Assembly (NCBI GenBank): GCA_030704615.1
Contig: CM060732.1
Coordinates: 66,712,001 to 66,776,000, forward strand
From: Takakia lepidozioides
Taxonomy: Eukaryota > Plantae > Bryophyta
Reading direction: 5' to 3'
Length of the DNA: 64,000 bases
This document shows positions 16,201-58,399 of this stretch, piece after piece. The notes under the pieces are model-generated. The model made no database searches and was not told where the DNA came from. It worked only from the letters and a program-made list of their open reading frames with translations. Positions within the stretch are counted from its first letter, which is position 1. Every line of letters starts with the position of its first letter. The position numbers were made by a program, and so were the translations under genes.

Positions 16201-19200
16201 GTATAATCCATGTTGACAGACTTGAACTCCAGGATGGAGTGATCCGTGCCTGACAACCTTATCGTGGTGATTTTGGATTCAAAGGTTCTTCATTTTGTAC
16301 AAGCCTTGATCACTGAAGCCTTGATTGCATCAGTAGCTGATGAGATATCCTGCAGGTTCGCGAAAAGAAGGCAAATGCAAGTGGGGTTATCGACGACGTT
16401 GCTCAGTTTATAAAAGAGTACTACCCAGGAAATGAGTCGGGCATTGTCTATTGCTTCTCACGCCGCGAGTGTGAGCAGGTTCGGCATTCTGTAGCCCCTC
16501 GTTCTCATCAAGATGAGAAATGTAGCCTTGCAAACCATTTGTATCTTCTCCCTGTTGTACTTAACAGCTTCCAAAACCTTCTTTCACAATCAAGTGGTGA
16601 AGGTTTTGGTGTCCACTGGCATTATGCTTCAGAAATTGAGACAAGGTAATGAAATGAAAACAGTCTGGGGATGTAACTCTGATTGCATCAACTTGGCAGC
16701 GGATGGAATGACGTATGTAGGATCGGCCTTGTGTTGGAGTCTAGGTTGCAGGAGAGCTTCGAAACCGTGGAATCTCAGCTGCACACTACCATGCGGATAT
16801 GGGTGCAGCTTCAAGGTCTTCTGTCCATAGGCGGTATGTCTCACCTTCCCCATTCTGTATCAGGATATACCAGCCTTATACCTTTGCCACAAGACACGAC
16901 ATTCACCATAACAACATAGTGCTCACTGTGGCTGGATAATGAAAGTTGTCTCCTTAGCTCTGTTGTTGGTAGCGTCATTAAGTTTGTAGTTGTCCATTGC
17001 CAAACTAGCAAGCATGCAAGGGACACTATGATTGCCCTATATGCGTATGGTTGTCCGTATTTAACAAGAGAAACAGCATGTATCAATTCTTGAGAATTTC
17101 CTCATGATGTCAATCTTTGTAGATGGTTGTTCATCTAGTAAGCAATAAACCTGAAGTCTCTGTTCTTCATGCCATCTGATTGCTGACTTACCTTTTGGAA
17201 AAAGCCATTAGCTTCTATCATATGTGGTGCTTGAGCTTTTTGGAACTTTATGGTCAAGACTAGATAGGTCAGGGATTATCTCGGCAAAGATGACTTAGTC
17301 ATGAGTTGGGTGCTGGCGGTCTCTGCCAGATGGAGCACCAACAAGTTACAAGTCATCGTTGGCACGGTATGCCCGTCCCATGGATTGCTTCGTCTAATAA
17401 CAAACAAGACATCACTCCCACTGGAAGATGTTTAGAACAAATAATTGCCCAAACTTCTTGTGAATCTTGATCACTTGAGGTTCGTCCAGGGGACTTCGAA
17501 GGTCCCATGTCTGAACATCTTTTTATGGCAAATGGTACAGATTTGCATGCGTGCGTATGGATGTGCGTATGGAATGGTGTAGGTATCTTCATTTTCATGG
17601 ATGTGTACATATGCAGTGCATGTAGGTACTGCCGAATTGTAGGGTAAATAATATGGTATGTGATTAAAAAAGAAAGGGTAACACCTCTTTAATCTTTGTA
17701 GCAGTGTCTTGCTATTCAAGTATGTGCTTGGGGATATTTCCAGCTGTTTGTGGTTCTAATACACTGCTTGTTTGTTGTACGGTCCCTGTGACTGCATGCA
17801 GGTGGCATTTGGAATGGGCATCAACAAGCCAGATGGTGAGAACCTGCCTAGCTTACCCATCTGAATTAAGTGATAGTCAGCCACATGTTGGAGCCCTTTA
17901 TGGACAGAGATAAAAGATGTTTCTCTCATTTATATTGAGATGTTTCCGTTTCTTATTGCTTGCCTTTAGACGGCTTAAAGTTGGCCTCAATGCTTATGAA
18001 AGAGATGCACTTATTCAGCAACCCCTGCAGTGTTGGGTTTCACTTGTCCTGGAGGTCTTACTACCTGTGGGAGACTAACCTTCCAGAGCTGGTTGTGGGG
18101 TTTCCACTCACTAAGGTATGCGAAACTCATCCCAAAATTGCCACACTAATCACAATCTGGTTACAAGATTTGAGTAGTTGTATATGATAGTCACTATAGA
18201 CATTATGCTAGAACCCACAACATTTCTGTAGAACTAACCCATGATAGTGATGGCCTGCAGTGCGGTTTGTGATACATCACAGTCTGAGCAAGTCCTTGGA
18301 GACATACTACCAGGTATCATTCATAAACTATCTGGCTTCCATTCCTGTGCAGAGAGGAGGAGAGAAAGACAGGGAGATGGTGTATGAGATATCTTGGGGG
18401 TCATTGGTGCTGGTAGGAAAGTGGGCGTGCAGGCCGCGATGGACTCCCATCCCATTGTCTTCTCTTCTTCAGGCCTGCGGATCTCCCCCGACAGGTGAGG
18501 TTGTTAACATAAGCCCCAAGATGTTCAGATTGCTTCATTTTAGGGTGTTTTGAATATGTGGAAGATTTTCTGGATCAAGGCATGTACGTACTCACGATCT
18601 TTGTGTGTCTTCTCTATGTCTCTCTTTGATCGATGTGGGTGCCTAGCTCTCTGTGCCCACTTAAGAATCTGCATCCGCTCGTTATGTATCTGATGATGCT
18701 GGTTCTTAACATCTGTCTCATTGTGCGAGTGGTCAGAGTTCGATGGTGTTTGCGGAGGTTGCAGGTCTGCATAACCTCTATGCCATAGCCCGGTTTTGTC
18801 AGGTGTGTTGTACTGCTATTCAATCTCACACAACCTTGACGATGTGGATATCTCAACCGAATTTACAGCTAGGTGCATAGGAGGCCATCGGATGTTCAAA
18901 GATAATGTTGATTTCAGTCTTAGTGGGTCATTAGTAATTGACTATGACTTTGACATTTTTAGGCCAATTTGCTGCAACAATGTTTGCTTGTCAGGAAGAT
19001 CTGGGCGCCCCTAATTTCCATAGGATGCTAACCTTCCGTGAGCTATGAGTATGAAACTCAATATGGGTTTGAGTTACTAGGGAGTGAATTTGAATAAGAA
19101 AACTGGCATTGACAATATACTAGAGAACATGATCATGAATACCCCACTGAGAAGGTGATGAGAGAGAGCCAGAGAACTGGAGATTAGATACAAAAACATG

Positions 19201-22200
19201 TCAGAGTATCCCTCCAAGATTGCACTTCTAACAGAAATGATGTTTGGTGGGAAATGTTTCAGTCAAAGCGAGCATGTCGTCGTGCAGCCTTCTTCCGCCA
19301 CTTTGGAGAGCGAGTCCAAGATTGCAATAGTAATTTCTCTTCTACTATACTCACTGCCGACATGCTACCTGCGTCCATTTATTGTTTGTTGTCAGTGAGG
19401 ACATCAGCACTAGTGTCTCGTGTATCGGAAGAGAGTATGTTGAGGGGGAAGTGCTGCTTTAAGGAACTTAGTATATGTCATTCTTCAGGTCCAGACTTGT
19501 AACTATCATAACAAGGGCACAGGTGTGTCTTTGGAGGTATTCGCTTCATTCTTACAAATGCAACTCAAAGAACCAATTTTTCAACCTTATCATGGATGAG
19601 CTGACGCTTCTCAACATTATTATGGTAACTTTGAATTTTCTTCTTTCTCACAGGCATGTGTGACAACTGTGCTTTCTCCAAGGACATTGTGGACCTGGAC
19701 GTCACAGGTGAGTTCTTCAACTACTGCCTTGGAAATTATGCTTTATTTAAACTGCCTAATCTTTCCTTGGAAACAGGCATCAGAGATGAGGGGAATACAA
19801 ATACGGTGCGGTTTCAATTTGAGACAGATGTGGGACAGCAACATAGTATGCTTGCGGTCATAGAGCTCTGTGGCATGGACATTTTATAGGATAGAAGAGT
19901 GCATACTTTGATTATTAATGATGCTGTGAGACCTGTTGTCTTTATATTCAAAGGTCGAGGTCAACGAACTTAATGATTTTGCTCAGGATGGCCGAGATGG
20001 GGATTCTGTTGTGCGAGGGTTGACAAGGGGCATGCAGACGTAACTGAGAAAGTTTGCATGGGTCGTGGGAGGTATTCAGAGCATGCAAAGTCACTGGTGA
20101 AATTAGTGCAGGAGTCTGAAAGCAAAGATCAGAAGTCAACAATGTTGCAACTGGTGGATCTTTGGAGAAGCCGCTCTCGTGAACCGGGCAAGCCTCCTTG
20201 ACCGGTAGTATAGTCGAGGTCTTGGTTACCATAATCACTTTAGGACCTCGATCCAATTTAATAACCAAATAAGATGACAACATCTGGTGACACCATCTTT
20301 CAGTGCTTCCTTGTTCTCTTACCAATATCTCTTTAGAGGGGGTAGACTTTCTACCCGAGACAATGTCCCTGCCTGTGGCCATATGGACATAGACCATGGC
20401 TTTTGATATATGTGGATTTGGACTGAAAGTATTAGTAGCACTTAATCATTGGACTGGCTGCACCAAACAGCCAGTTGGTTGCATAATTTTGATCCGTCTT
20501 TCCTTCTTCAATACTCAATCTGGGGTGCACATGTTCACATTAAAATTGTTCACAGACACAGGGTGAAGGACTGGGGATTTTAAACTCACTTTTTTGCGAT
20601 TAAGTGGATGTAAGTGAGATAATTGCAGGTTCGGATTCCCAACTGGCAAAGGAGCTCAGTAAAGATGATGTGGAGCGCGTTATCACTCAACTTGTTCTGG
20701 ATGGGATTTTGGTAACAAACCACCCGAGTGATTGTAGGGTTTAGAGGGTGAATGGATGAATCCATAGGTAAAATGGACACTTGAGTTGAACTCATCTGCA
20801 GAGCCAAATTCAGTTATTAGAGCTGTCCCTTTGCTTGTTTTTGTTTTGTCCAAAGTGCATCTTGAATGTTGACTTTCTCTCTGTCCCAGTGCTGCTATGA
20901 TGTTGTCCACCATATTGTTCAGCACAATGTCAATGCCAGCTCTTAAACTGATCCCTCTATCCCCAGCTTGGAGAATGTTAGTATCTTGCAGGAAGCCCGG
21001 TAAGTACCACAAAGCAAAATCTTTGTGAAGACCTTCATTGATTACATATATCGTTGTTCCCTCACCGTTGTAATCTCTTATGTCAAATGTGAACGTGAAG
21101 GATGCCTGTTAATGAGTTACATTGATGTTGCAGAAAGAGGTGTTTGCACATACAGCATATGCCACCAATGCCTACATAGCACTGGGTACTTGGAGAGCCC
21201 TTCTCCATGGTAGGCCCTTTATGTTCATGATCCAAAAGTTTGCACCTTTGCTGGAAAGTGTGATTGATGTTTTCCAGGGATAGAAGCTTTTCTGGTTCAT
21301 GAGCAGGATGCCATCCCTCTCGCTCGCTTCCTTGTTACTAAATCCCAGTGAAGAGGGATAGGGAGAGAAAGAGGAAAAGGATCAGTGTCTCGCACAAGAT
21401 TTGAACCTTTGTGTTCACAGGAAGAAACAAAGAAACAAAAGACACCAACTGGGAATGTGGACATGTGTCAGGCCAACGGAATGTCAAGCTTGAGGTTGTG
21501 CAACAAGTGCACAGTGCAAAGAAGGGTGCAAGGGCCGCACAAAACGGATTGGGAATGGTGGATGGAAAGATACAATCGCCCATGGGGTGCATGCTTGACG
21601 ATTTGCGACAGCAACTGGCAGCTGCTCATGGTGGCATCTTCCCACACTCAGTACTCTCGTCGCAACACATTGCCTCGCTCTGTTCTTGCAAACCTATCTC
21701 CTTGAACCAGGTAAAGTCACGATATTGCCCTTCTGATTCAATCTTCTGCGTAGGCCAGTGTTGTCATTCAAGGTTCTTTGTTTTAAATAGAGCACAAATT
21801 GATGGAAGAAACAGTACCAGATCTCATGTAGATACTCGAATTTTGCTACAGCTGCAAAGCACACATTTTCTCTTTTGTTATTTGGTCATTTAAGGAGGAA
21901 ACACCCCAGATCCAACCTCTGTATCTCTGTTACACAAAGACACTACATTGGCTTGAAACACCAGTCCTGCACCTCTTCAGTGAAGTCAAGTATTGTGAAT
22001 GTCTAATGTGTACGTAAGTTGTTGGGGTAGGTGGAGGAGGTGATCGGAAAGAGGAAAGCAGAGCAATATGGCCATGAGATTCTAGTTTCAATCAGCGAAT
22101 ACCTAGCAAACAACCCAGACAGCCCTTTGCGAGCAGGTCCTTGGGTGACTCCTAAAGCCAAGGGCGTTCCTCTCACCTCATCAACCTCTGTTACTCCCAA

Positions 22201-22486
22201 AGCAACTTCCAGTCGGCTCCCTTTGAAGAAAGTGTCAAAACCCAGCAAGAAGACCCCACCAACAACAGGAAAACTTGAGGAACTTCGGAATGATTCAGCT
22301 AAAACTTCTTCCAAAACAGCTGGTAGAACCAGCTTATGTATTGATTTGGAAACCGATAGTGAGCCAGAAGAGAATGCTGCATCCTTCAAGGATGTCAAAG
22401 CTGATCATGATAGTGTTGAAGATGAGATTGAAGACGATGATGAAGATGATGACGACTTTGTCCTGTTCAAGAGAATAAAAAGGTGA
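13277..22486 (+). CDS. RECQL2: ATP-dependent DNA helicase RecQ2 (RECQL2/MED34-like), multi-exon; first coding exon not located
   Basis: Exons encode [15 protein letters not shown]...[88 protein letters not shown] Zn ([12 protein letters not shown]...CDNC) and HRDC ([22 protein letters not shown]). Stop at 22486. Confidence 0.93.
14290..14726 (-). pseudogene. Argonaute (AGO4/6-clade-like) N-domain fragment, antisense in a RecQ2 intron
   Basis: Exon from 14504 after ttgtacag: VRISV...[12 protein letters not shown]...[17 protein letters not shown], then a frameshift to [13 protein letters not shown], matching the AGO AYDGxKxLF...F.V.L motif. Confidence 0.75.
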
Positions 22487-23437
22487 CTGGTGGTTTAAAA
22501 AAATCGGCGGAGGAAGGAATGAGTAGAAAAAATTTCATGGCCAGCTGGTTGACGCCAAGGGAGATGGGCAAAAGGGATACATGCCTGGGGCCACAGTCGG
22601 CACAGAAAGGTCATCACATACTCCATCAGTTCTATTTAACTTTGAAAATGAGTTAAATCTGGGCTTCTATTTTGTCAGGCGAAATCCCATCTGCAAGTTT
22701 GTTTGTGGTGGCTTTCTGGGCTCAGTTGATTGATGGATTTAGGGCCGATTCTGATAAGAGGGAAAAACAGGGTGAAATGTGTTGAAGAATGCCTAGATTA
22801 GCAGTGCCTGAGTTTATCAATTGTGCCGCAGCTGCTGGGGCTTCCAGTTGACCATCTACCCATGCAGGTTTCTTGGAGATATCCTTCCACTGGGAATCAT
22901 AGGTCATCAGGAGCTTGAAATCCGGCCCTCTTGGATGAATCTGGACCCACACTCTATCCCTGCTCCTTCAGCTATCCATGCCTCTGCACAAATCATGCAT
23001 ACATCCTTGCCTTGCTGCTAGCCTAGAATTGATTGGTCCAGCAAACACCCCAACCCTACTTATCACACTAGTTCCAATGCTGACCTGCATCTGCTTCCAT
23101 CAGGCAGCATTCACCTTTTTGCCTCGATTGCCTCGATTGTTCCACCATTGACTGGGGTGGGACATGCATTCATTCCAGCGCTTCTCCTTGTCTCTGTTAT
23201 TGTTATCTGTTTTCCGATTCTTTCCTGTTTGCCACATTGGCAATAACATGTCAAAATCAGCTAACTTGCAGAATTCAAGATGAAAATTTAGGGACGACTC
23301 TGATGAGAGGCATCTCAGGGCCGAGTCTGGTGAGAGGCAAATCACGTGAAACCCCTCAGCTCTCAAGGATGCATCGTCATCCCTTCCCCGCGCCCCGCAA
23401 AGACATTTCGGGCATTTCGGGCAGTTTCCAAAGAAAT

Positions 23438-23500
23438 TGACGACGACGATGACGTGTTTATGATGACGTGACGACGAAACTTGACGATGATGACGTGGCA
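23438..23500 (+). promoter_or_regulatory. Cluster of six TGACG motifs, including TGACGTGGC, upstream of LPA1
   Basis: ttgacgacgacgatgacgtg...atgacgtgacgacg...ttgacgatgatgacgtggca, ~300 bp 5' of the LPA1 ATG. Confidence 0.4.
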
Positions 23501-23791
23501 CTATGGTAGCCTATATCTGCTCTACGCTAAACTAGGTTCCGACCTTCTGTCGTCGCTAGAATATACCCTGATATTAGCCACAGCTAGTAGTGGCTAGTTA
23601 GCCTCCGGTGCGGCCGGGGGCTTAATCTGATTGATGTAGATTAGTTGGAAAGCCTCGTCCATGTTCATGTTCGGCGTGAAGTGTGAAGTGAAAAAGAGGT
23701 TGAAAGTTTGGGTTGATGGATCTTCCCACGTTTTTTCTCTTTCTGTTCCTCTTCTCGCTCCCTACGCGTTGGGTTTTTCTCGGTAGGTGCA

Positions 23792-36164: not shown

Positions 36165-39100
36165 TCACCAGTAATCTCCACAGGAACAAACCCCAGCTTT
36201 GAAGCGGTGGAAGCGACTGGCATCCCGTACAACAAGCACTCGCCCCACAATCTTTGAAATGAACTTGGTGGCAGTGTGGCAGTCACCACACACACGGAGG
36301 TTCTTGATGATGCGGATAGGTGTCCCAGGTGGCATGCTGATAAGCCCAAAAGCAATGGCCAGTTTCTCACTGTGATGGCAAAGAAAAGATTCCTTCTGCT
36401 CTTCCTCCACATTTTGCAACACAAAGCGTGTGTCAGGCACATACCCGGCCTCCTTCATGCTCTCAGTCAACTTCTTCATCTTTGCATGGATTTCCTCAAT
36501 TTGTGGATGTAATTTGTCATCTGCAACAAATGTATGCACCCGGTTGTCCACCTCAATGTAGCTGCACCCTGGCTCCTTTCTGACACCTCTGTCCTGCATC
36601 ATTTTTCTCACCTTTGCTGTGTCATCCCATCTGCCAGCAGCAGCATAGATGTTTGATAGCAACACGTAAGTGGCAGCATCGTGTGGATCCCACTTGAGAA
36701 GGCAATCTGCCGCACGTTCTGCTACATCCACATTACCATGGATTCTGCAGGCACCAAGCAAGGGGCCCCATACTGAAACATCTGGCTGAACTGGCATTCT
36801 GCCAATGAGGTCCTCTGCCTCGTCCAGTCGCCCTGCACGGCCAAGAAGATCCACCATGCAACCAAAATGCTCCACTGCAGGCATGAGGCCATGATCTTGA
36901 CTCATGGACTCAAAATAGTGTTGTCCCTCATCCAACAGGCCCACATGGCTACATGCCGAGAGAACACATATAAAGGTGATGCCGTTTGGCTTCAAGGATT
37001 CTTGTTGCATTTGTTCAAATAGTTGCAGGGCCTCCATACCGCACCCATGCTGGGCATATCCTGCGATCATTGCATTCCATGACACCACATCTCGTGCAGC
37101 CATTTTGTCAAACACTTGATGAGCATCCTTGATGCTCCCGCATTTCGCATACATGTCTACAAGGGTGTTTTCAAGAATGATATCTTGCGTGATTCCAGCT
37201 TTAACAATGTCAGAGTGGACCTCTATGCCTTTTTCCAGGGCTGCCAGGCTGGCACACGCATTGAGCACGCAAGTAAATGAAACCTTGTTGGGTGTCACCC
37301 CTTCCTGTATCATTTGCTCGTAGAAATCCAATGCATCCCTACCAGCATCATGCTGAGCATACCCTGTAATAATGGCACTCCACGAGACCACGTCTGGCTT
37401 CACGCCTTCAAGTTGCATTTGCTCAAACAGTTGGAGGGCCTGCCTACTACAACCATGCTGACCATATCCTGCTATCATCGCATTCCAGGACACCACATCT
37501 CGTTTAGCCATACCATCGAACACTTGCCGGGCATCCTCTATGCTCCCGCATTTGGCATACATGTCGACAAGGGCGTTCTCCAGAGTGATATCTGACACAA
37601 TTCCAGCTTTCATCATGTCAGCATGGACCTCTAAGCCCTTATCCAGAGCTGCCAGGCTGGCACATGCCTTCAGCAAGCAAGTGAAGGTGACCTTGCTGGG
37701 TTTCACCCCTTCCCCTATCATTTGCTCATAAATCTCCAAAGCCTCCCTACCACACCCATTTTGATTGTATCCTGCTATCATCACATTCCAAGACACCACA
37801 TCTCGTTTAGATATATTATCAAACACTTGGCAGGCATCCTTGATGCTCCCACATTTGCCATACATGTCGATAAGGGTGTTCTCCAGATTGGTATCTGGAA
37901 TGACTCCAGCTTTGATGATATCAGCATGGACCTGTATGCCCTTTACCAGGGACGTCAGGCTGGCACAGGCATTGAGAACACAAATAAAAGTGACCCTGTC
38001 GGGTATAAGCCCTCCCCGTGTCATTTTCTCATACAACTCAACAGCCTCCCTGCCACCTCCATTCTGACCATATCCTGCTATCATAACATTCCATGATACC
38101 ACATCTCGTTTGGCCATATTGTCAAATATTTGACGTGCATCCTTTATGCTCCCACATTTCGCATACATGTCAAGGATGGTGTTCTCAAGAATGATATCTG
38201 GAATAATTCCAGCTTTGGTAATGTCTGCGTGGACCTGTATGCCCTTTTCCAGGGCTGCCAGGCTCGCACATGCCTTAAGAATGCAGATAAAAGTGACCCC
38301 ATTAGTGGTCATCCCTTTTCGTGTCATTTCTTCATAAATCTCGACAGCCTCCTTACAACACCCATGCTGACCATACCCTGCTATCATCACATTCCATGAC
38401 ACCACATCTCGTTTAGCCATAGAATTGAACACTCTACGCGCATCCGGTATGCTCCGGCATTTGGCATACATGTCAACGAGGGTATTCTCTAGATTAATAT
38501 CTGGTGCAATTCCAGCTTTGATTATGTCAGCATGGACTTCTTTGCCTTTTTGTAGAGATGCCAGGCCAGCACATGCCTTTAGAAGGCAAATGAAAGTGAC
38601 CTTGTCTGGTGCCACTCCTTCCTGTATCATGTGCTCATAGATATTGAAAGCTTCCCTACCACACCCATGCTTTGCATATCCAGCTATCATAATATTCCAC
38701 GAAAACATATCCCGTCCAAACATTTCGTCAAACACACGGCGTGCATCATCCACGCTACCACACTTGGCATACATATTGACTAGAGTATTGAGTATAAATA
38801 TGTTTGGTTTGAATCCACTTTGGATGATGTGGCTGTGCACCTGCTTTCCCTCTGCTAGGCCTTGTATTTTGGTGCACTCCCGCAAAAGACAAAAGTAAGT
38901 ATTGAGGTCTGCTGGAATGCCTCGTTGGTTCAAAATGTGCAGAGCCTCTTCCAGTTGTCCTGCCATACATAGTGTCTTCACATCATCCCATTGTGCTTGA
39001 CTCTGTAGCATGGCAGCTAGCTCTGCTTTCACCCAAGGAGGGTTCAACAGACCCTCAATCCAAAGGACTTCCTTGGAGCGCTTATGTCTGAAGTCTGGCG

Positions 39101-40404
39101 ATCTTGGACTTTTCTGTGAAACCACCAGTGAGTATGTGAGCTGCTGTACCTTCAACAACAGGCTGGCCTATCAGGCTACAACCACTAAAACTCATATAAT
39201 TGGGAACAAACTTGATCGATCTACTTGATAGCAATGGTAGGTTTTTGTGTCTGCTGCTCTGAGCAACACTTTCAAGAATGCAATTACCATGAACTATCAT
39301 CCAATGCACACACCCTCTTCATGCCAGCTTCCCTCACAAGCACTCCTAACAGACTCTTGATGTGGCCTCACCTTTATAAACCTGTTGTCCCACCATTGTG
39401 AAGGATCTGAGAAGAACTCATGCCAGAGCCAATCGCTGGTCAACGTTTCGCCTGCATGCAAACATGACAGAGATCTTTTGCTCTCCATATTGCCAGTCTC
39501 TTGTGGGAACTGCTAGCATAGGCTTTCCACAAATTATTGGTATGTTGGACTTGGCCCTAAAGGTATGCAGTGTTTTCAGCCACATCTCTACGCCAACCCA
39601 TGCAACAATACATAATTCACTATCACTGAATTGTCACTGTCTGTCTGTGTGCATGGTGGGTACAAACGTCACTACTGGCTGGGGACCAATCCCTAAAGGG
39701 TATGTCATAGCCAATGTTCACAGGGTGCGGTCAAAGAGTATATCTCTCTGCCCTTATCCATCCCTTGGTAAGACTGTAAATAGTTGTTTGCACAACGGCC
39801 TGACGGCAATAACGTCTATCAAGTATGTGGCAACCATCCCTCCACATTGAGGACACTCAAAATTTGCACCTGTTGAACTACTGAAATTCGTGAGCCCTGT
39901 CATAACTCTCACGCCGAGGAAAATTCGTGGTGTCCCCAACCAGGGTATCCCACACTGCTACGGCCGCAATGTTCCTAATTACCCAAATCTCTCTCTTTAT
40001 GCAATGAGCAGAAAGACATAAAGGTTCTTTCGGTAGATACTACTGAAGAAGAAATTCGAAGGAGGACAAAACCTCAACACCCAAGATGGGCGTAGCATCT
40101 GATGGGATGGGTTAAGCACAAAATGGAGCCCGATGCTCAGACCTAAAAAGTGCACAAAGAACTACAAGTCGCTACCTTTCTCCGCTATCGCTGCAGAGTG
40201 GAGCTGCACTGTAGTCATCACTCGCAAAGGTCTGGGGCTATACTTTGGAAAGCTGCATACCCATTTCAGTTCAACAGGCTGGCCCGTTACTCTGTTGCAT
40301 AATGATCCCGCCTCTTCACCCCAAGGACTGACAAAAGCAGGTCTGCACTGGTCCGAGGGACCGTAGCAATGATAGTCACATCTGGGGCAACCACCCCTCC
40401 ACAT
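36165..40404 (-). CDS. PLS-class PPR-E-DYW RNA-editing factor with N-terminal OSB-type PDF motif
   Basis: Exons 40404-40176 (VELKW), 39451-39372 (LWHEFFSDPSQWWDNRFIK) and 39113-36165 (SPDFRHKRSKEVLWIE...PPWV, P-L-S repeats, PGCS, HSEKLA, CGDCH, DYW). Phases 1 and 0 are compatible. Confidence 0.93.
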
Positions 40405-52339: not shown

Positions 52340-53191
52340 CTGCCCTCAGCTTAGGGCCACCACCGCCCCGATGGTGGAAAACAAACCGATCACTTGCAGA
52401 ACAAGATTCGATCGAATGAATCCGACCACCCACGATACGTTTCTGAATTTCGCTGGCACAGAATTTGCATGGGAGAGAGAGAATGCACATGGCACGGACT
52501 CATGTGATGATTTCAGTGCCACCCACAACCAAGAAGGCCTCACAGACCACAAAAACTCACCACTTCACAACAATCTGTGCTCTGAGAAGCACGCATGATC
52601 TCATCACCTGCACGCTTGCTGCATCTGTGCAGCAAAATTTATGTCAGATTCGTGAAGAATGTGTTGCGAGAGGCCAAGCAAGCAAAGAGTACCTTTGCCT
52701 TGCGAGACTGGATATACCCTTGCACAGAATTCGTCCATCCAACATTCATTCCAATATACAGTGTCTCGAGTCTCGGCTTCCGAGTCCTTCCAGTGATCTA
52801 ATCTCTTCCAGCGATGGCGATGGCAGCCTGCTCAGAGAGCATACGAGCATACCCAATTCTCGGGAATGGCCGGGAGGCATCTCAGCGTGCAGCAGATCAA
52901 CGGGAGAGAGTAAGGAGCTGAAGTGGAGAGAAACAACTGGGCAATGCCGAGCCCCAGACCCTTGCAATGCGAAAACTGGAACCTTTCCTCATCTCAAGGC
53001 AGGTGTGTATGAGGCGTTTCGAAACTTCTGTTTGTTTTGGTTGTCTAATTTTGGGTGTCTGAGCTATCCAGGCTGCGGACTGTCCTTGACCCATGTTTGC
53101 ACCAATTCTGATGCAAGAAGAGAAGGTCACATGGTATGGCATGTAGGGCTGCAGAAGAACGGGAGTGTAATCGAAACCTTTTCCGTCTTCC

Positions 53192-53751
53192 ATGAACTCA
53201 TGCAGTATCTCCCGAAGAAGCTGCAATGGGGAACATGTTGCGGATCTCAATTCATGCAGCAGAGTGGCTGGGAGTGCTGTGGAGCTGAAATGGACATGTG
53301 CTTTGGCAGTGCAAGGAAAGGGACCTTTGCAGGGGGTGGGTATGGCGCCCTCCACCCCGCCAGGGAAACCGAAGACAGGTAAGGACATGAAACTCGTTAC
53401 GTGTTTATTTCTCTCTGTAGATTGTGGGCAATCCATGTTCCAAATTGCCTTTGAACCATTCGAGCAGAAACGAAGACCTGTAGACTTCCATCTACTCGTT
53501 CATTATCTCCAGAACTACCTGGGATTCTGGTCATATATCTTCTTTCCACCCATGGCATGAGAGAGGGACAGAGAGAGGAGAGCGAGCTCACCCATAGTTC
53601 ACGACAATCCGCGAACAGCAAATCAGTGTCAGGGCCAGTATAGATGAAACAAAAGCTAGTTCTAGCACCGCCGCCCTAGTCCCCAGTTTGACACAAATTT
53701 GATAAATGTGGCTGTGATTGCACTACCATTAAGACATCGGTTGAGTGACTT

Positions 53752-53788
<37 letters not shown>

Positions 53789-56700
53789 AACATTATAATG
53801 TCCACTGCGGGCCCATGGGACAGGTCAGGACAAACCAACGACTCTATCAAGTGTCACCTTAAGACGCAGTGCCTCAGCAGGTTCGCCAACAGAGGAAGAG
53901 ATGAGAATTCATTACAGTCATGGGAGGGTCCATGGGATACAGTAGAAAAAGACTTTAGGACCACTGAAACAAAGGAACTATCTAAATCCCAAACTTTGCA
54001 CAAAGACGCACTGCCACTAAGCACTTAGGGTCCTCATGACTGGAAGAGAAAGACGGTAGCTTATGGAGAACATATAATGACATTGTACAACACCACTTCT
54101 AGCTGATGTGATGTTTCTTTGGATCTCCAGAAATGTTGTCCAAAACTAGAGTAACACTCCTTGAAATCAACGTGTTTAGAAGCTGGCAATGTACTCATGT
54201 TGTTGCGGTTTTTGTACACAGGGGAAGCGATAAGTACGGAACAACTCTGGCAGGAGTTCTTCTCAGATCCTTCACAGTGGTGGGATAACAGGCATGAGAA
54301 GGTGAGGGACATGTTCATTTAGGCTGTGACAGAGGGTGTCAGTTTTCCACACTGTTGCGAGAAATCAATCAAAGCAGTTATTACTGTGGGCATTCATAGC
54401 TTGTGCTTCCTTTTTCCAAAGAGCTTGAAGGTAGGTTTCCAGGTTCTTACCTGTATTTGAGAGATGTTTGGATGTTTGGTGGTTAAATTATGGCTGTTCA
54501 TTTGTCGACTCACTGACATTACAGAGAAGTCAAAGATCACCAGACTTCAAGCATAAGCGCACCAAGGAGGTCCTTTGGATTGAGAGTTGGTCAAACCCTC
54601 CTTGGGTGAAATCCGAGCTAGCTGCCATGACACAAGATCAAGGGCGATCTGGTGATGATTTGAATGTCAAGGTACCTCATGGAGCTCCAGGCCAAGAACA
54701 CAACGGGTATTGTTTTGATGATGATTGAAGAGTTCCAAGTCTAGAAAGGGTACAGTTTATCCTTCAAAGTAGATGACTGCAGTAGTTTGTAGCTCTCTTA
54801 AATGTTGCAAATGGACTGTCCTCATGGTCATTCAAAGATATAGTACTTAAGTTTGAGCTAAGAGGTTTGTGACTAACAATTTTGGGTCGTTCAGGGTGGC
54901 TGTGTTAAACCAGGTAGACATGTTTGTCACACAGCAAACTGGCAGCAGTGTTAGCACCTCCAGCATCACCACTGTTCCTGAAACAGTGACAAGAGAGAGA
55001 CTCACTCGTAGGGCTGCAAGCACACCAGGCCAGGGAGGACGACTAAAAGACATGCTGCACATTTTGAACCAACAAGGAAACTGGGCAGACTCCAATACTT
55101 ATGTCTGTCTCTTACAGGAGTGCATCAACATGAAAGACTTGGCAGAGGGAAGGCAGGTGCATGCCCACATTACACAAAGTGGATTTAAACCAAACATGTT
55201 TCTCCTCAATACCCTTGTAAACATGTATGCCAAATGCGGGAGCATTGCCGATGCCCGCCAAGTGTTTGACAAAATGCCTGAACGAACATTGTTTACATGG
55301 ACTATAATGATGGCAGGATATGCCAAACATGGGCATGCCGAGGAGGCTCTGAAAATCTATGAGCATATGCAACAGGAAGGTGTTGTGCCTGACAGGGTTA
55401 CATTTATATGTATCCTCAATGCATGTGCCACCCTAGGTGCCCTGGAAAAGGGCAAAGAGATCCATGCTGATATCTTGAAAGCTGAAATTCCGTCATATAT
55501 AAATTTGGACACTGCCCTTGCTGATATGTATGCCAAATGCGGGAGCATGAGGGATGCTCATCAAGTGTTCAGCAGTATGGTTAAACGTAATGTCGTCTCA
55601 TGGAACGTCATGATTGCAGGTTATGCTGAGAATGGGTGTGGGGAGGAGGCCTTCAAGATCTATGAGCAAATGCAATTCGAAAAGGTGGCACCCGACAAGG
55701 TCACATTCATTTCCATTCTCAATGCTTGTGCCATCGTGGGAGCGTTGGAAAAGGGCAAAGAAGTCCATGCTGATATAGTGAAAGCTGGAATTGTGTCATA
55801 TATAAATTTAGACACTGCCCTTGCTGACATGTATGCCAAATGCGGGAGCATGAAGGATGCACGGCAAGTGTTCGACAACATGCCTAAACATGATGTGGTG
55901 TCATGGAACGTCATGATCACAGGTTATGCTGAGCATGGGTCTGGGAGGGATGCATTTGCTAGCTATGAGCAAATGCAACAGGAAGGGGTGACAGCTAACA
56001 AGGTCACGTTCATTTCTCTTCTCAATGCGTGTGCTAGTTTCGGGGCGCTTGAAAAGGGCAAGCAGATTCATGCTGACATCATCAAGGCTGGAACTGCATC
56101 CTATATTAAATTGGGGAATAGCCTTGTCGACATGTATGCCAAATGCGGGAGCTTGAAGGATGCCTGGAAAGTGTTTGAGGCTATGGCTCAACGAGACGTG
56201 GTCTCATGGAATGCCATGATTGCTGGATGCGCCCAGCATGGGGTTGGAAGGGAGGTTCTACAAATATTTGAACAAATGCAACAGGAAGGGTTGAATCCAA
56301 ATGGCATCACCTATGTATCTCTTCTCTCTGGATGTCGACATTTGGGCTTAATTGATGAAGGTCTTCACTACTTTGATGCCATGAGGCAAAATCATGGCCT
56401 CGCGCCTTCAGTGGAACATTTTGGCTGCATGGTGGACCTTCTTGGCCGTGCAGGGCAAGTGGATGAGGCAGAGGCCCTCATTGACAAAATGCCAGTCGAA
56501 CCAAATGCTTCAGTGTGGGGAGCCTTGCTTGGTGCCTGCAGGATTCACAGCAATGTCAAGCTAGCAGAACGAGCTGCAAATGGCGTTTTGAAGTGTGATC
56601 CACAGAACCCTGGAGCTTATGTGCTACTATCGAACATCTATGCTGCGGCTGGCAGGTGGGACGATAAAGCAAAGGTGAGAAAAATGATGGAGGACAGAGG

Positions 56701-57121
56701 TGTCAGAAAGGAACGAGGGCACAGCTGCATTGAAGTCAACAACCAGGTGCATACATTTGTTGCAGAAGACAAATCGCACCCCCAAATTGAGGAAATCCAT
56801 GCCGAGCTGCAAGGATTGGCTGGGCAGATGAAGGAGGCTGGGTACATGCCTGACACCCGCTTTGTATTGCATGATTTGGAGGTGGAAGAAAAAGAACTTT
56901 TTCTTTGCTACCACAGTGAGAAGCTGGCCATTGCGTTTGGGCTGATCAGCACAACCCCTGGGACGCCTGTCCACATCATCAAGAATCTTCGGGTGTGCGG
57001 TGACTGTCACACCGCCACCAAGTTCATCTCAAAAATAGTTGGGCGCACACTTATTGTGCGGGATGCCAACCGCTTTCACCACTTCCAGGATGGGGTTTGT
57101 TCTTGTGGGGACTACTGGTGA
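53192..57121 (+). CDS. PLS-class PPR-E-DYW RNA-editing factor with N-terminal OSB-type PDF motif
   Basis: Exons 53192-53378 (AVELKW), 54222-54301 (LWQEFFSDPSQWWDNRHEK), 54525-54706 (SPDFKHKRTKEVLWIE...PPWV) and 54895-57121 (PLS array, HSEKLA, CGDCH, DYW). Phases 1/0/2 join in frame. Confidence 0.92.
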
Positions 57122-58399
57122 ATCAAGCAAAGTGGGTGCTTCAAGCCTCAGGATGAAAAGGTTACTATTGGGATGGGTGCTATCTTTTATAAATTCTGCA
57201 AAGCAGAGATAATGCTTCGCCCTTATTTCTGTTGTGGGTGCACTGTTGATGAGGGATTCCAAGAGCCACCTGGCACTTCCCATGTTCTTCCTACCCAAAT
57301 GCCTGTTAAGCCCTGGAGAGGTGGTTCCTCTCTTTCAGTGGTATGGTCGCCAAGCAGGATGTAGCAATTTTCACTGGCATCGCCAAAAAGCTCATGCCCC
57401 ATCTGTATGGGGCGTTGGGCTCCCCTACAGCTTGAAGGTGCCATAACCACAGCGCCGGCTGAATTCAGAGTCAATTTTGTCTCCAAGTTTTAATAATTAC
57501 ATTCTGACCTCAGTAGTGTTGGCTACCATATATCCTCGTCACCTGAAAATTCTCGTCATTTGTTTCTTCCATATCGTGGGTACCTATATGGAAACATTTC
57601 TCTAGTCAAAATATGATCCTTTTGATCTACAGTTTTCCACTGATAGAAAACAGCCAGTCCTTATTGGTAACTAGCTTTGTTGACAACCAGATTTGCAGCA
57701 GCTGTTCTCACTGCAGTTGGCAGGGCGAGTTCTGTGTTTGGGACTGAATTAGTAGTCACTGTTGTCTTTACTATTCTTGAGGCTGTGTGCTTGTTGGCCA
57801 CTTGTTGAAGTTCACCAGAGTGCCACATTAACATAGCAACACTGGTTCACACAAACAGACAAACGGACAAACGGACAGAGAGCCAACAAGTGAAGCAGGC
57901 TTTCCATCTGGGTACGGTGAGTCACCTGGGCATTTTGTGACCAGTGTTGTTTTTTGACAGGTAGCCCTACCTTTTTTGTGACAAGTTAAATTTTGTTTTG
58001 ACTTTCACTGCGACAGACCACTTCGAGAAAATGCCTTTCACATGACAGTGGAGCTCCAGTCCGTGGAAAAAAATATATATATCCGTGAATACATATGGTA
58101 TTGTCTTTATTGTTTTCATGGGTTCCAAGTCCAACTCAAACATGTAGCATTCGTACCACTTATTCTCTAACCATAAGACTTTAGCATTTTTATCTTCATA
58201 CGTAGCCCCAAGCCTCTCTTCTTTGAGAGATGTTTTCTTGGCTTATCAATGAGCTAGGAAATACAATATGCCATATGATTGTAAGTTTGTAAGTAAAGAT
58301 TTTGAATCATGCAAGATGGCCGTGTCAAATTAGGTGCTATTGTTTGAATATGGCACTCCTCCCCAACAAATGCTTTTGAAACAGGATCAGGAGAGGGAC

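Follow-up and report, generated by a model that had tools for sequence, protein, structure and literature searches.

The 64,000-nucleotide stretch of the Takakia lepidozioides genome analysed here (contig CM060732.1, positions 66,712,001 to 66,776,000 of the forward strand; called the window below, and the source of all coordinates) carries on its plus strand, at 53192-57121, a gene that we refer to as gene 1. In this gene a PDF motif, by its sequence of the kind known from the plant organellar single-stranded-DNA-binding OSB proteins, stands N-terminal to a PLS-class PPR array followed by E motifs and a DYW deaminase domain. Gene 1 could be read directly as four exons joined in frame (53192-53378, 54222-54301, 54525-54706 and 54895-57121), and all three of its introns are bounded by GT..AG. 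With exon lengths of 187, 80 and 182 nt, exon 4 stays in the frame of the 750-residue open reading frame (ORF) at 54869-57121. An earlier note on this DNA had proposed that two small exons with GT-AG borders are joined in phase to an intact PLS-E-DYW ORF, and this structure is borne out by the coordinates, the reading frames, the Pfam matches and the contig joints described below. In every search, alignment and structure prediction the exons of gene 1 were analysed singly, and the full-length comparisons are those of database proteins. The parts of the gene are as follows.

53192-53378, plus strand: exon 1, 187 nt; start codon and leader of 62 codons plus 1 nt
53379-54221, plus strand: intron 1, 843 nt, GT..AG, phase 1
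54222-54301, plus strand: exon 2, 80 nt; first half of the PDF motif, ..LWQEFFSDPSQWWDNRHEK
54302-54524, plus strand: intron 2, 223 nt, phase 0; interrupts the PDF motif at a conserved position
54525-54706, plus strand: exon 3, 182 nt; second half of the PDF motif, RSQRSPDFKHKRTKEVLWIESWSNPPWV.., then linker
54707-54894, plus strand: intron 3, 188 nt, GT..AG, phase 2; not in the paralog, gene 2
54895-57121, plus strand: exon 4; linker, PLS-class PPR array, E1, E2, DYW deaminase domain, TGA stop
55037-56545, plus strand: PPR array (Pfam PPR and PPR_2; motifs parsed by eye)
56546-56812, plus strand: E1 and E2 (E+) motifs (Pfam)
56840-57118, plus strand: DYW cytidine-deaminase domain (Pfam DYW_deaminase)

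The ATG of exon 1 is the earliest start codon downstream of an in-frame stop, and the exon is closed by the GT at 53379. Its leader is presumed to be an organelle-targeting presequence, and a VELKW.C patch is common to the exon 1 leaders of gene 1 and of its paralog in the window. Intron 1 contains a GT/GA microsatellite.

Pfam holds no model of the PDF motif, and the homology of the module encoded by exons 2 and 3 was therefore tested in both directions. Starting from the OSB side, a hidden Markov model (HMM) was made from 323 motif instances of 139 non-PPR proteins and run on the 2671 six-frame segments of the window. The top match of this OSB-only HMM is the exon 3 segment (E 5.2e-14, HMM positions 25-61) and the second match is the exon 2 segment (E 1e-10, HMM positions 5-29), so that the OSB PDF motif claimed in the earlier note for the small exons is matched in each of the two exons separately. 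Starting from the PPR side, annotated homologues of the exon 4 protein show 50-55% identity to it, and 18 of the best 120 have a PDF motif before the PPR array. A forward profile of these 18 PDF segments located N-terminal to PPR arrays, when searched against 1.84 billion representative proteins, returned 1261 matches at E <=0.001 and 559 at E <=1e-10. The best 150 of these matches are mostly proteins of 300-500 residues with at least two C-terminal PDF copies; those among them that were tested carry the Pfam SSB domain, and the named ones are OSB3 proteins (Amborella, Euphorbia). Gene 1 retains every invariant or near-invariant column of the motif as defined from a 114-sequence alignment, viz., W10, W20, D22, R24, K27, P33, D34, F35, L44, W45, P52, W54 and V55, and the signature W..F..P..WWDNR..K...PDFKHK...LW...P.WV is complete in the translations of exons 2 and 3. 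By these sequence comparisons, exons 2 and 3 encode a true OSB-type PDF motif.

Structure prediction with AlphaFold2 on the 114-sequence alignment (first row P0114:69-130) gave a confident, compact unit with a mean predicted local distance difference test score (pLDDT) of 93.8. In the model, short strands coincide with WWD and FKH and lie between two predicted helices, one at positions 2-15 and one at 53-61. Foldseek searches of the model against solved structures had WW domains as their best rows, with E >3, and a wide VIA-align search of solved structures reached a best Z of 3.1, with no significant match. In the ESM Atlas, the model could be superposed on streptophyte SSB-family clusters with a template modelling (TM) score of 0.89 and on three PPR/DYW clusters with TM scores of 0.89-0.95, and the predicted fold of the module thus appears alike on the two kinds of protein. 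Separately, hypothetical tailed-phage proteins (Uroviricota) of 199 and 187 residues, which form two clusters, were superposed with TM scores of 0.71 and 0.65 over 57-62 residues; given how short the domain is, this similarity between models is possibly a weak hint of a deeper origin of the PDF module.

In the C-terminal part of gene 1, exon 4 matches PPR (E 5.8e-76, 11 stretches) and PPR_2 (E 1.2e-81, 9 stretches), and about 14 motifs could be parsed by eye as L-S-P-L-S-P-L-S-P-L-S-P2-L2-S2, preceded by a partial first P motif. These are followed in the exon 4 protein by E_motif (E 5.4e-20, residues 551-613), Eplus_motif (E 1.2e-7, residues 618-639) and DYW_deaminase (E 3.7e-43, residues 649-741), the last over the full profile, 1-93. 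The characteristic residues of the DYW domain are intact, with HSE at 56912-56920, CGDC at 56996-57007 and the terminal DYW at 57110-57118. At the beginning of the DYW domain, the PG box (56699-56728, plus strand) reads KERGHSCIEV, in which R replaces the usual P, while the paralog has KEPGCSYIEV. Gene 1 has the features of a PLS-E-DYW editing factor in everything that was tested except this PG box. Pfam returned nothing meaningful on exons 1-3, the sole match being CTK3_C with E 0.073, and the Pfam SSB domain was not found on exons 1-4. As it has no OB-fold domain, gene 1 is not itself an OSB gene; it shares one module with the OSB family.

Transcript evidence was sought by mapping the contigs of two public runs, X1 and X2, whose record type is RNA by guess only, to 53000-57300. 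All three joints predicted in the earlier note for the PDF exons are carried by contigs, and contig depth is zero across all three introns; the transcript-like contigs thus include the PDF exons, as the check proposed in the earlier note asks. The joint 53378/54222 is present in contigs of both runs with a shorter side of 54 letters; before it, contigs cover exon 1 over 53202-53374 in X1 and 53145-53374 in X2, those of X2 beginning at 53145, 5' of the ATG. The joint 54706/54895 is found in a 344-nt X1 contig that lies on 54582-54705 and 54894-55113 with zero mismatches. The joint 54301/54525 is the weakest, being carried by one X1 contig whose shorter side of 27 letters falls under the 31-letter rule of the mapping tool. 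No molecule spanning all four exons of gene 1 was seen among the X1 and X2 contigs.

An additional joint, 55156/55620, bounded by GT..AG, is present in contigs of both runs and skips 463 nt (55157-55619, plus strand) within the PPR exon. This length is not a multiple of three, and the skip would shift the frame. The joint may be a non-productive splice or an assembly collapse of near-identical PLS repeats.

The window contains a second gene of the same architecture and a degenerate copy of the motif, both on the minus strand.

36165-40404, minus strand: PDF-PPR-DYW gene 2; exons 40404-40176, 39451-39372 and 39113-36165
22722-23501, minus strand: degenerate PDF-like pair; ORF 23100-23501 has its first half, ..RWNECMSHPSQWWNNRGNRGK, and ORF 22722-22952 its second half, ..PRGPDFKLLMTYDSQWKDISKKPAWV

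Gene 1 and gene 2 are arranged head to head, about 12.8 kb apart, and are 62% identical over the PPR-DYW part. Exon 2 of gene 2 (39451-39372) encodes the first half of the PDF motif and, like exon 2 of gene 1, is 80 nt long. In its exon 3 (39113-36165) the second half of the motif runs uninterrupted into a 997-residue PPR-E-DYW ORF, and since the second half of the motif and the PPR array share one ORF, the fusion is visible in gene 2 without any splice model. The OSB-only HMM matches the two PDF halves of gene 2 with E 8.4e-8 and 3e-10. Over the 61 PDF-motif codons shared by the two genes, a small sample obtained as the sum of the per-exon codon counts, the ratio of nonsynonymous to synonymous substitution rates (dN/dS) is about 0.39. 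The genes differ in that the intron at 54707-54894 is found only in gene 1, where the linker from the PDF module to the PPR array is also the longer one, and in that the PPR array of gene 2 is longer by about 240 residues. The halves of the degenerate pair match the OSB-only HMM with E 5e-5 and 1.8e-4, and no PPR ORF follows the pair; it is perhaps a relic, perhaps a small gene with nothing but the PDF motif. Adjoining it, short ORFs at 18260-22486 on the plus strand encode an acidic C-terminal tail and motifs resembling those of RecQ-type helicases, and by these motifs they appear to be exons of a RecQ-like gene.

Gene 1 is one member of a large family whose proteins are annotated in public proteomes as hypothetical or as plain PPR proteins. 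A region search yielded 85 PPR proteins with a PDF motif; Diphasiastrum complanatum, a lycophyte, accounts for about 78 of them and Sphagnum species for the others, and further PDF-PPR proteins are present in the liverwort Calypogeia fissa and the fern Adiantum capillus-veneris. In all 122 PDF+PPR proteins that were collected the module is N-terminal, in one to three copies, and 44 of them carry a DYW domain; the other 78 are without it, some perhaps as truncated gene models. Among the collected proteins, which are the best-ranked matches that were inspected, PDF-PPR proteins come only from seedless plants, and among these best-ranked matches no PDF motif was found on proteins of Ginkgo or Cryptomeria. 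The architecture is old and widespread in seedless land plants. Two short Sphagnum proteins, P0210 (151 residues) and P0410 (217 residues), have one PDF motif and no Pfam domain; they may be genuine proteins with the PDF motif alone, or pieces from the N-terminal end of PDF-PPR genes.

How the fusion arose can be approached through the intron inside the PDF motif. It is a phase-0 intron that falls between the K ending ..NRxxK and the five residues before PDF, and its boundary is identical in gene 1, in gene 2 and in the PDF-PPR genes of Calypogeia and Sphagnum. The same boundary is found in two Riccia fluitans OSB genes (L004 and L005), whose proteins carry, besides the Pfam SSB domain, a PDF motif at the C-terminus; the idea that this intron is special to PPR genes was rejected on that ground. 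In OSB3 of Euphorbia peplus (L001) the intron is absent and both motifs lie in one terminal exon. That liverwort OSB genes and PDF-PPR genes share a phase-0 intron position is a new observation, and it suggests that an OSB-type gene was the source of the module and that the copying took place at the level of DNA. Judging from these gene sequences, the PDF module most likely stems from an OSB-type gene and was transferred together with its intron, by fusion at the DNA level or by exon shuffling. On the simplest reading, the intron is ancient and its absence from some angiosperm OSB genes is due to later loss. The phylogeny built from 131 PDF modules, over 62 columns, is not resolved: nine changes of the PPR label are required on it, of which starred branches force only one, and some of the short proteins labelled OSB in it may be N-terminal fragments of PDF-PPR proteins, P0210 and P0410 being two that blur the OSB and PPR labels. 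In an approximately unbiased (AU) test a single clade of PPR-borne modules was not rejected (p 0.187), and a single origin of these modules is allowed by the sequences.

PLS-E-DYW proteins bind RNA 5' of the target cytidine, with one motif per base and in parallel orientation, and the DYW domain is a zinc-dependent deaminase that, in the characterised cases, acts on RNA. Based on the above, we consider it probable, taking the explanation as a whole, that gene 1 is an expressed nuclear gene of a seedless-type land plant that encodes a site-specific organellar C-to-U editing factor of the PLS-E1-E2-DYW type, with an N-terminal OSB-type PDF module as an auxiliary single-strand binder. By analogy with characterised members, the target cytidine would be deaminated by the DYW domain once the PPR array has read the RNA on its 5' side. 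Since PPR arrays bind RNA in parallel, the N-terminal PDF module would be located where the bound RNA has its 5' end, and there it would most likely have an auxiliary role, binding single-stranded nucleic acid without sequence specificity. If it engages RNA, it could add affinity or keep the substrate site unfolded, and if it engages DNA, it could hold the editing factor at transcribing nucleoids. The presence of the module on many PPR proteins without a DYW domain points to a role in binding or localisation and not in deamination, and the PDF module probably stands outside the deamination chemistry.

Several points weigh against this explanation. The joint between exons 2 and 3 is carried by a single contig with a short side of 27 letters, and both runs are RNA by guess only. 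The RG in place of PG in the PG box means that full activity of the DYW domain is not assured from the sequence. The function of the PDF module on PPR proteins is argued by comparison with OSB proteins, and the module could possibly be lost with the cleavage of the presequence. Furthermore, a role on RNA is an assumption, as OSB1 and OSB2 are reported to prefer single-stranded DNA over double-stranded DNA or RNA (PMC4166229).

An alternative takes up the idea of a DNA tether from the earlier note: the PDF module would bind organellar DNA in single-stranded form, for example at R-loops or on the non-template strand, and would hold the factor on nucleoids for co-transcriptional editing, in the extreme with the DYW domain deaminating single-stranded DNA. 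The extreme is the least likely reading; characterised DYW domains act on RNA, and the 78 of the 122 PDF+PPR proteins that are without a DYW domain count against a role in DNA deamination. In favour of tethering, reviews report that OSB1 binds single-stranded DNA through its PDF motif, that this motif is sufficient for the binding in AtOSB1 (PMC6963530, PMC4166229, PMC6451138), and that OSB1 and OSB2 favour single-stranded DNA over RNA; the PPR-borne modules keep all conserved residues and an OSB-like predicted fold. On balance we regard the alternative as unlikely. A more far-reaching proposal is that the PDF module ties the PLS editing factors of seedless plants to the single-stranded DNA of transcribed nucleoids, with editing on the nascent transcript or, at the extreme, on exposed single-stranded DNA, and that it thereby forms a physical link between DNA maintenance and RNA editing that was replaced or lost in seed plants; this we hold to be less likely still.

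It is also conceivable that the PDF module is a protein-protein or oligomerisation module that recruits or multimerises editing factors, a helper role that other proteins would fill in seed plants. AtOSB2 is reported to form tetramers (PMC6963530), and it would be an assumption that OSB oligomerisation runs via the PDF motif. The predicted compact helix-strand-strand-helix unit without a match among solved nucleic-acid-binding folds would agree with such a role, yet the conserved aromatic and basic residues suit nucleic-acid binding at least equally. The restriction of PDF-PPR proteins to seedless plants among the collected proteins is likewise in line with it, although that pattern rests on best-ranked matches. 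Taken together, these points make an oligomerisation module improbable, to a slightly greater degree than the nucleoid link. That the PDF exons are irrelevant in gene 1, either removed with the transit peptide or a drifting leftover on an ordinary PPR-DYW factor, is very improbable: the module does sit between the presumed presequence and the PPR array, and the degenerate relic at 22722-23501 lies in the same window, but every conserved PDF residue is intact, the dN/dS between the paralogs is about 0.39 over the motif (61 codons only), and architecture and intron have been kept across liverworts, mosses, lycophytes and the Takakia lepidozioides genome.

The reading that we prefer is that of an editing factor with an auxiliary single-strand binder. 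PPR-DYW proteins are the RNA-editing enzymes of plant organelles and are under development as programmable RNA base editors, and in liverworts, mosses, lycophytes and a fern an accessory module from a single-stranded-DNA-binding family has been kept on editing factors. The retention of the PDF module across these lineages suggests a helper function where editing is most extensive, and the intron that it has in common with liverwort OSB genes is a clue to the origin of the fusion. Small and confidently predicted, the PDF module has no solved relative, and a solved structure of it would be new. We found no published description of a PDF-PPR/DYW fusion in a literature of which our coverage is incomplete; the earlier note, for its part, knew of no functional description of this architecture. 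A review of accessory domains on PPR proteins names RRM, LAGLIDADG, SMR, NYN, CBS and SAP, and PDF is not among them (PMC9459714).

Among known systems, the OSB proteins have the same PDF module of about 55 residues, as seen from the reciprocal profile matches, the conserved residues and the predicted fold (TM 0.89), and liverwort OSB genes have the same phase-0 intron at the same codon boundary as gene 1. The OSB proteins carry the module C-terminal to an OB fold and often repeated, whereas gene 1 has no SSB/OB fold and places the module on the N-terminal side of a PPR array and a deaminase. With the PLS-E1-E2-DYW factors, such as the DYW-type PPR proteins of Physcomitrium (PMC9459714), gene 1 shares the PLS array, the E1 and E2 motifs and a DYW domain with HxE, CxxC and terminal DYW, and it adds to these the N-terminal PDF module on two small exons. 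The PPR4-type proteins (maize PPR4, PpPPR_3/76) offer an analogy for the PDF module, as they too may be viewed as having a general single-strand-binding module N-terminal to a PPR array; however, their RRM is unrelated to PDF, their PPR array is of the P class and they function in splicing and not in editing. The PDF-PPR proteins of Diphasiastrum complanatum, Sphagnum spp., Calypogeia fissa and Adiantum capillus-veneris have the same architecture and, in those that were checked (Calypogeia, Sphagnum), the same PDF intron as gene 1; the best matches among them are 50-55% identical to gene 1 over the PPR-DYW part, and some differ from it in having two to three PDF copies or in being without a DYW domain.

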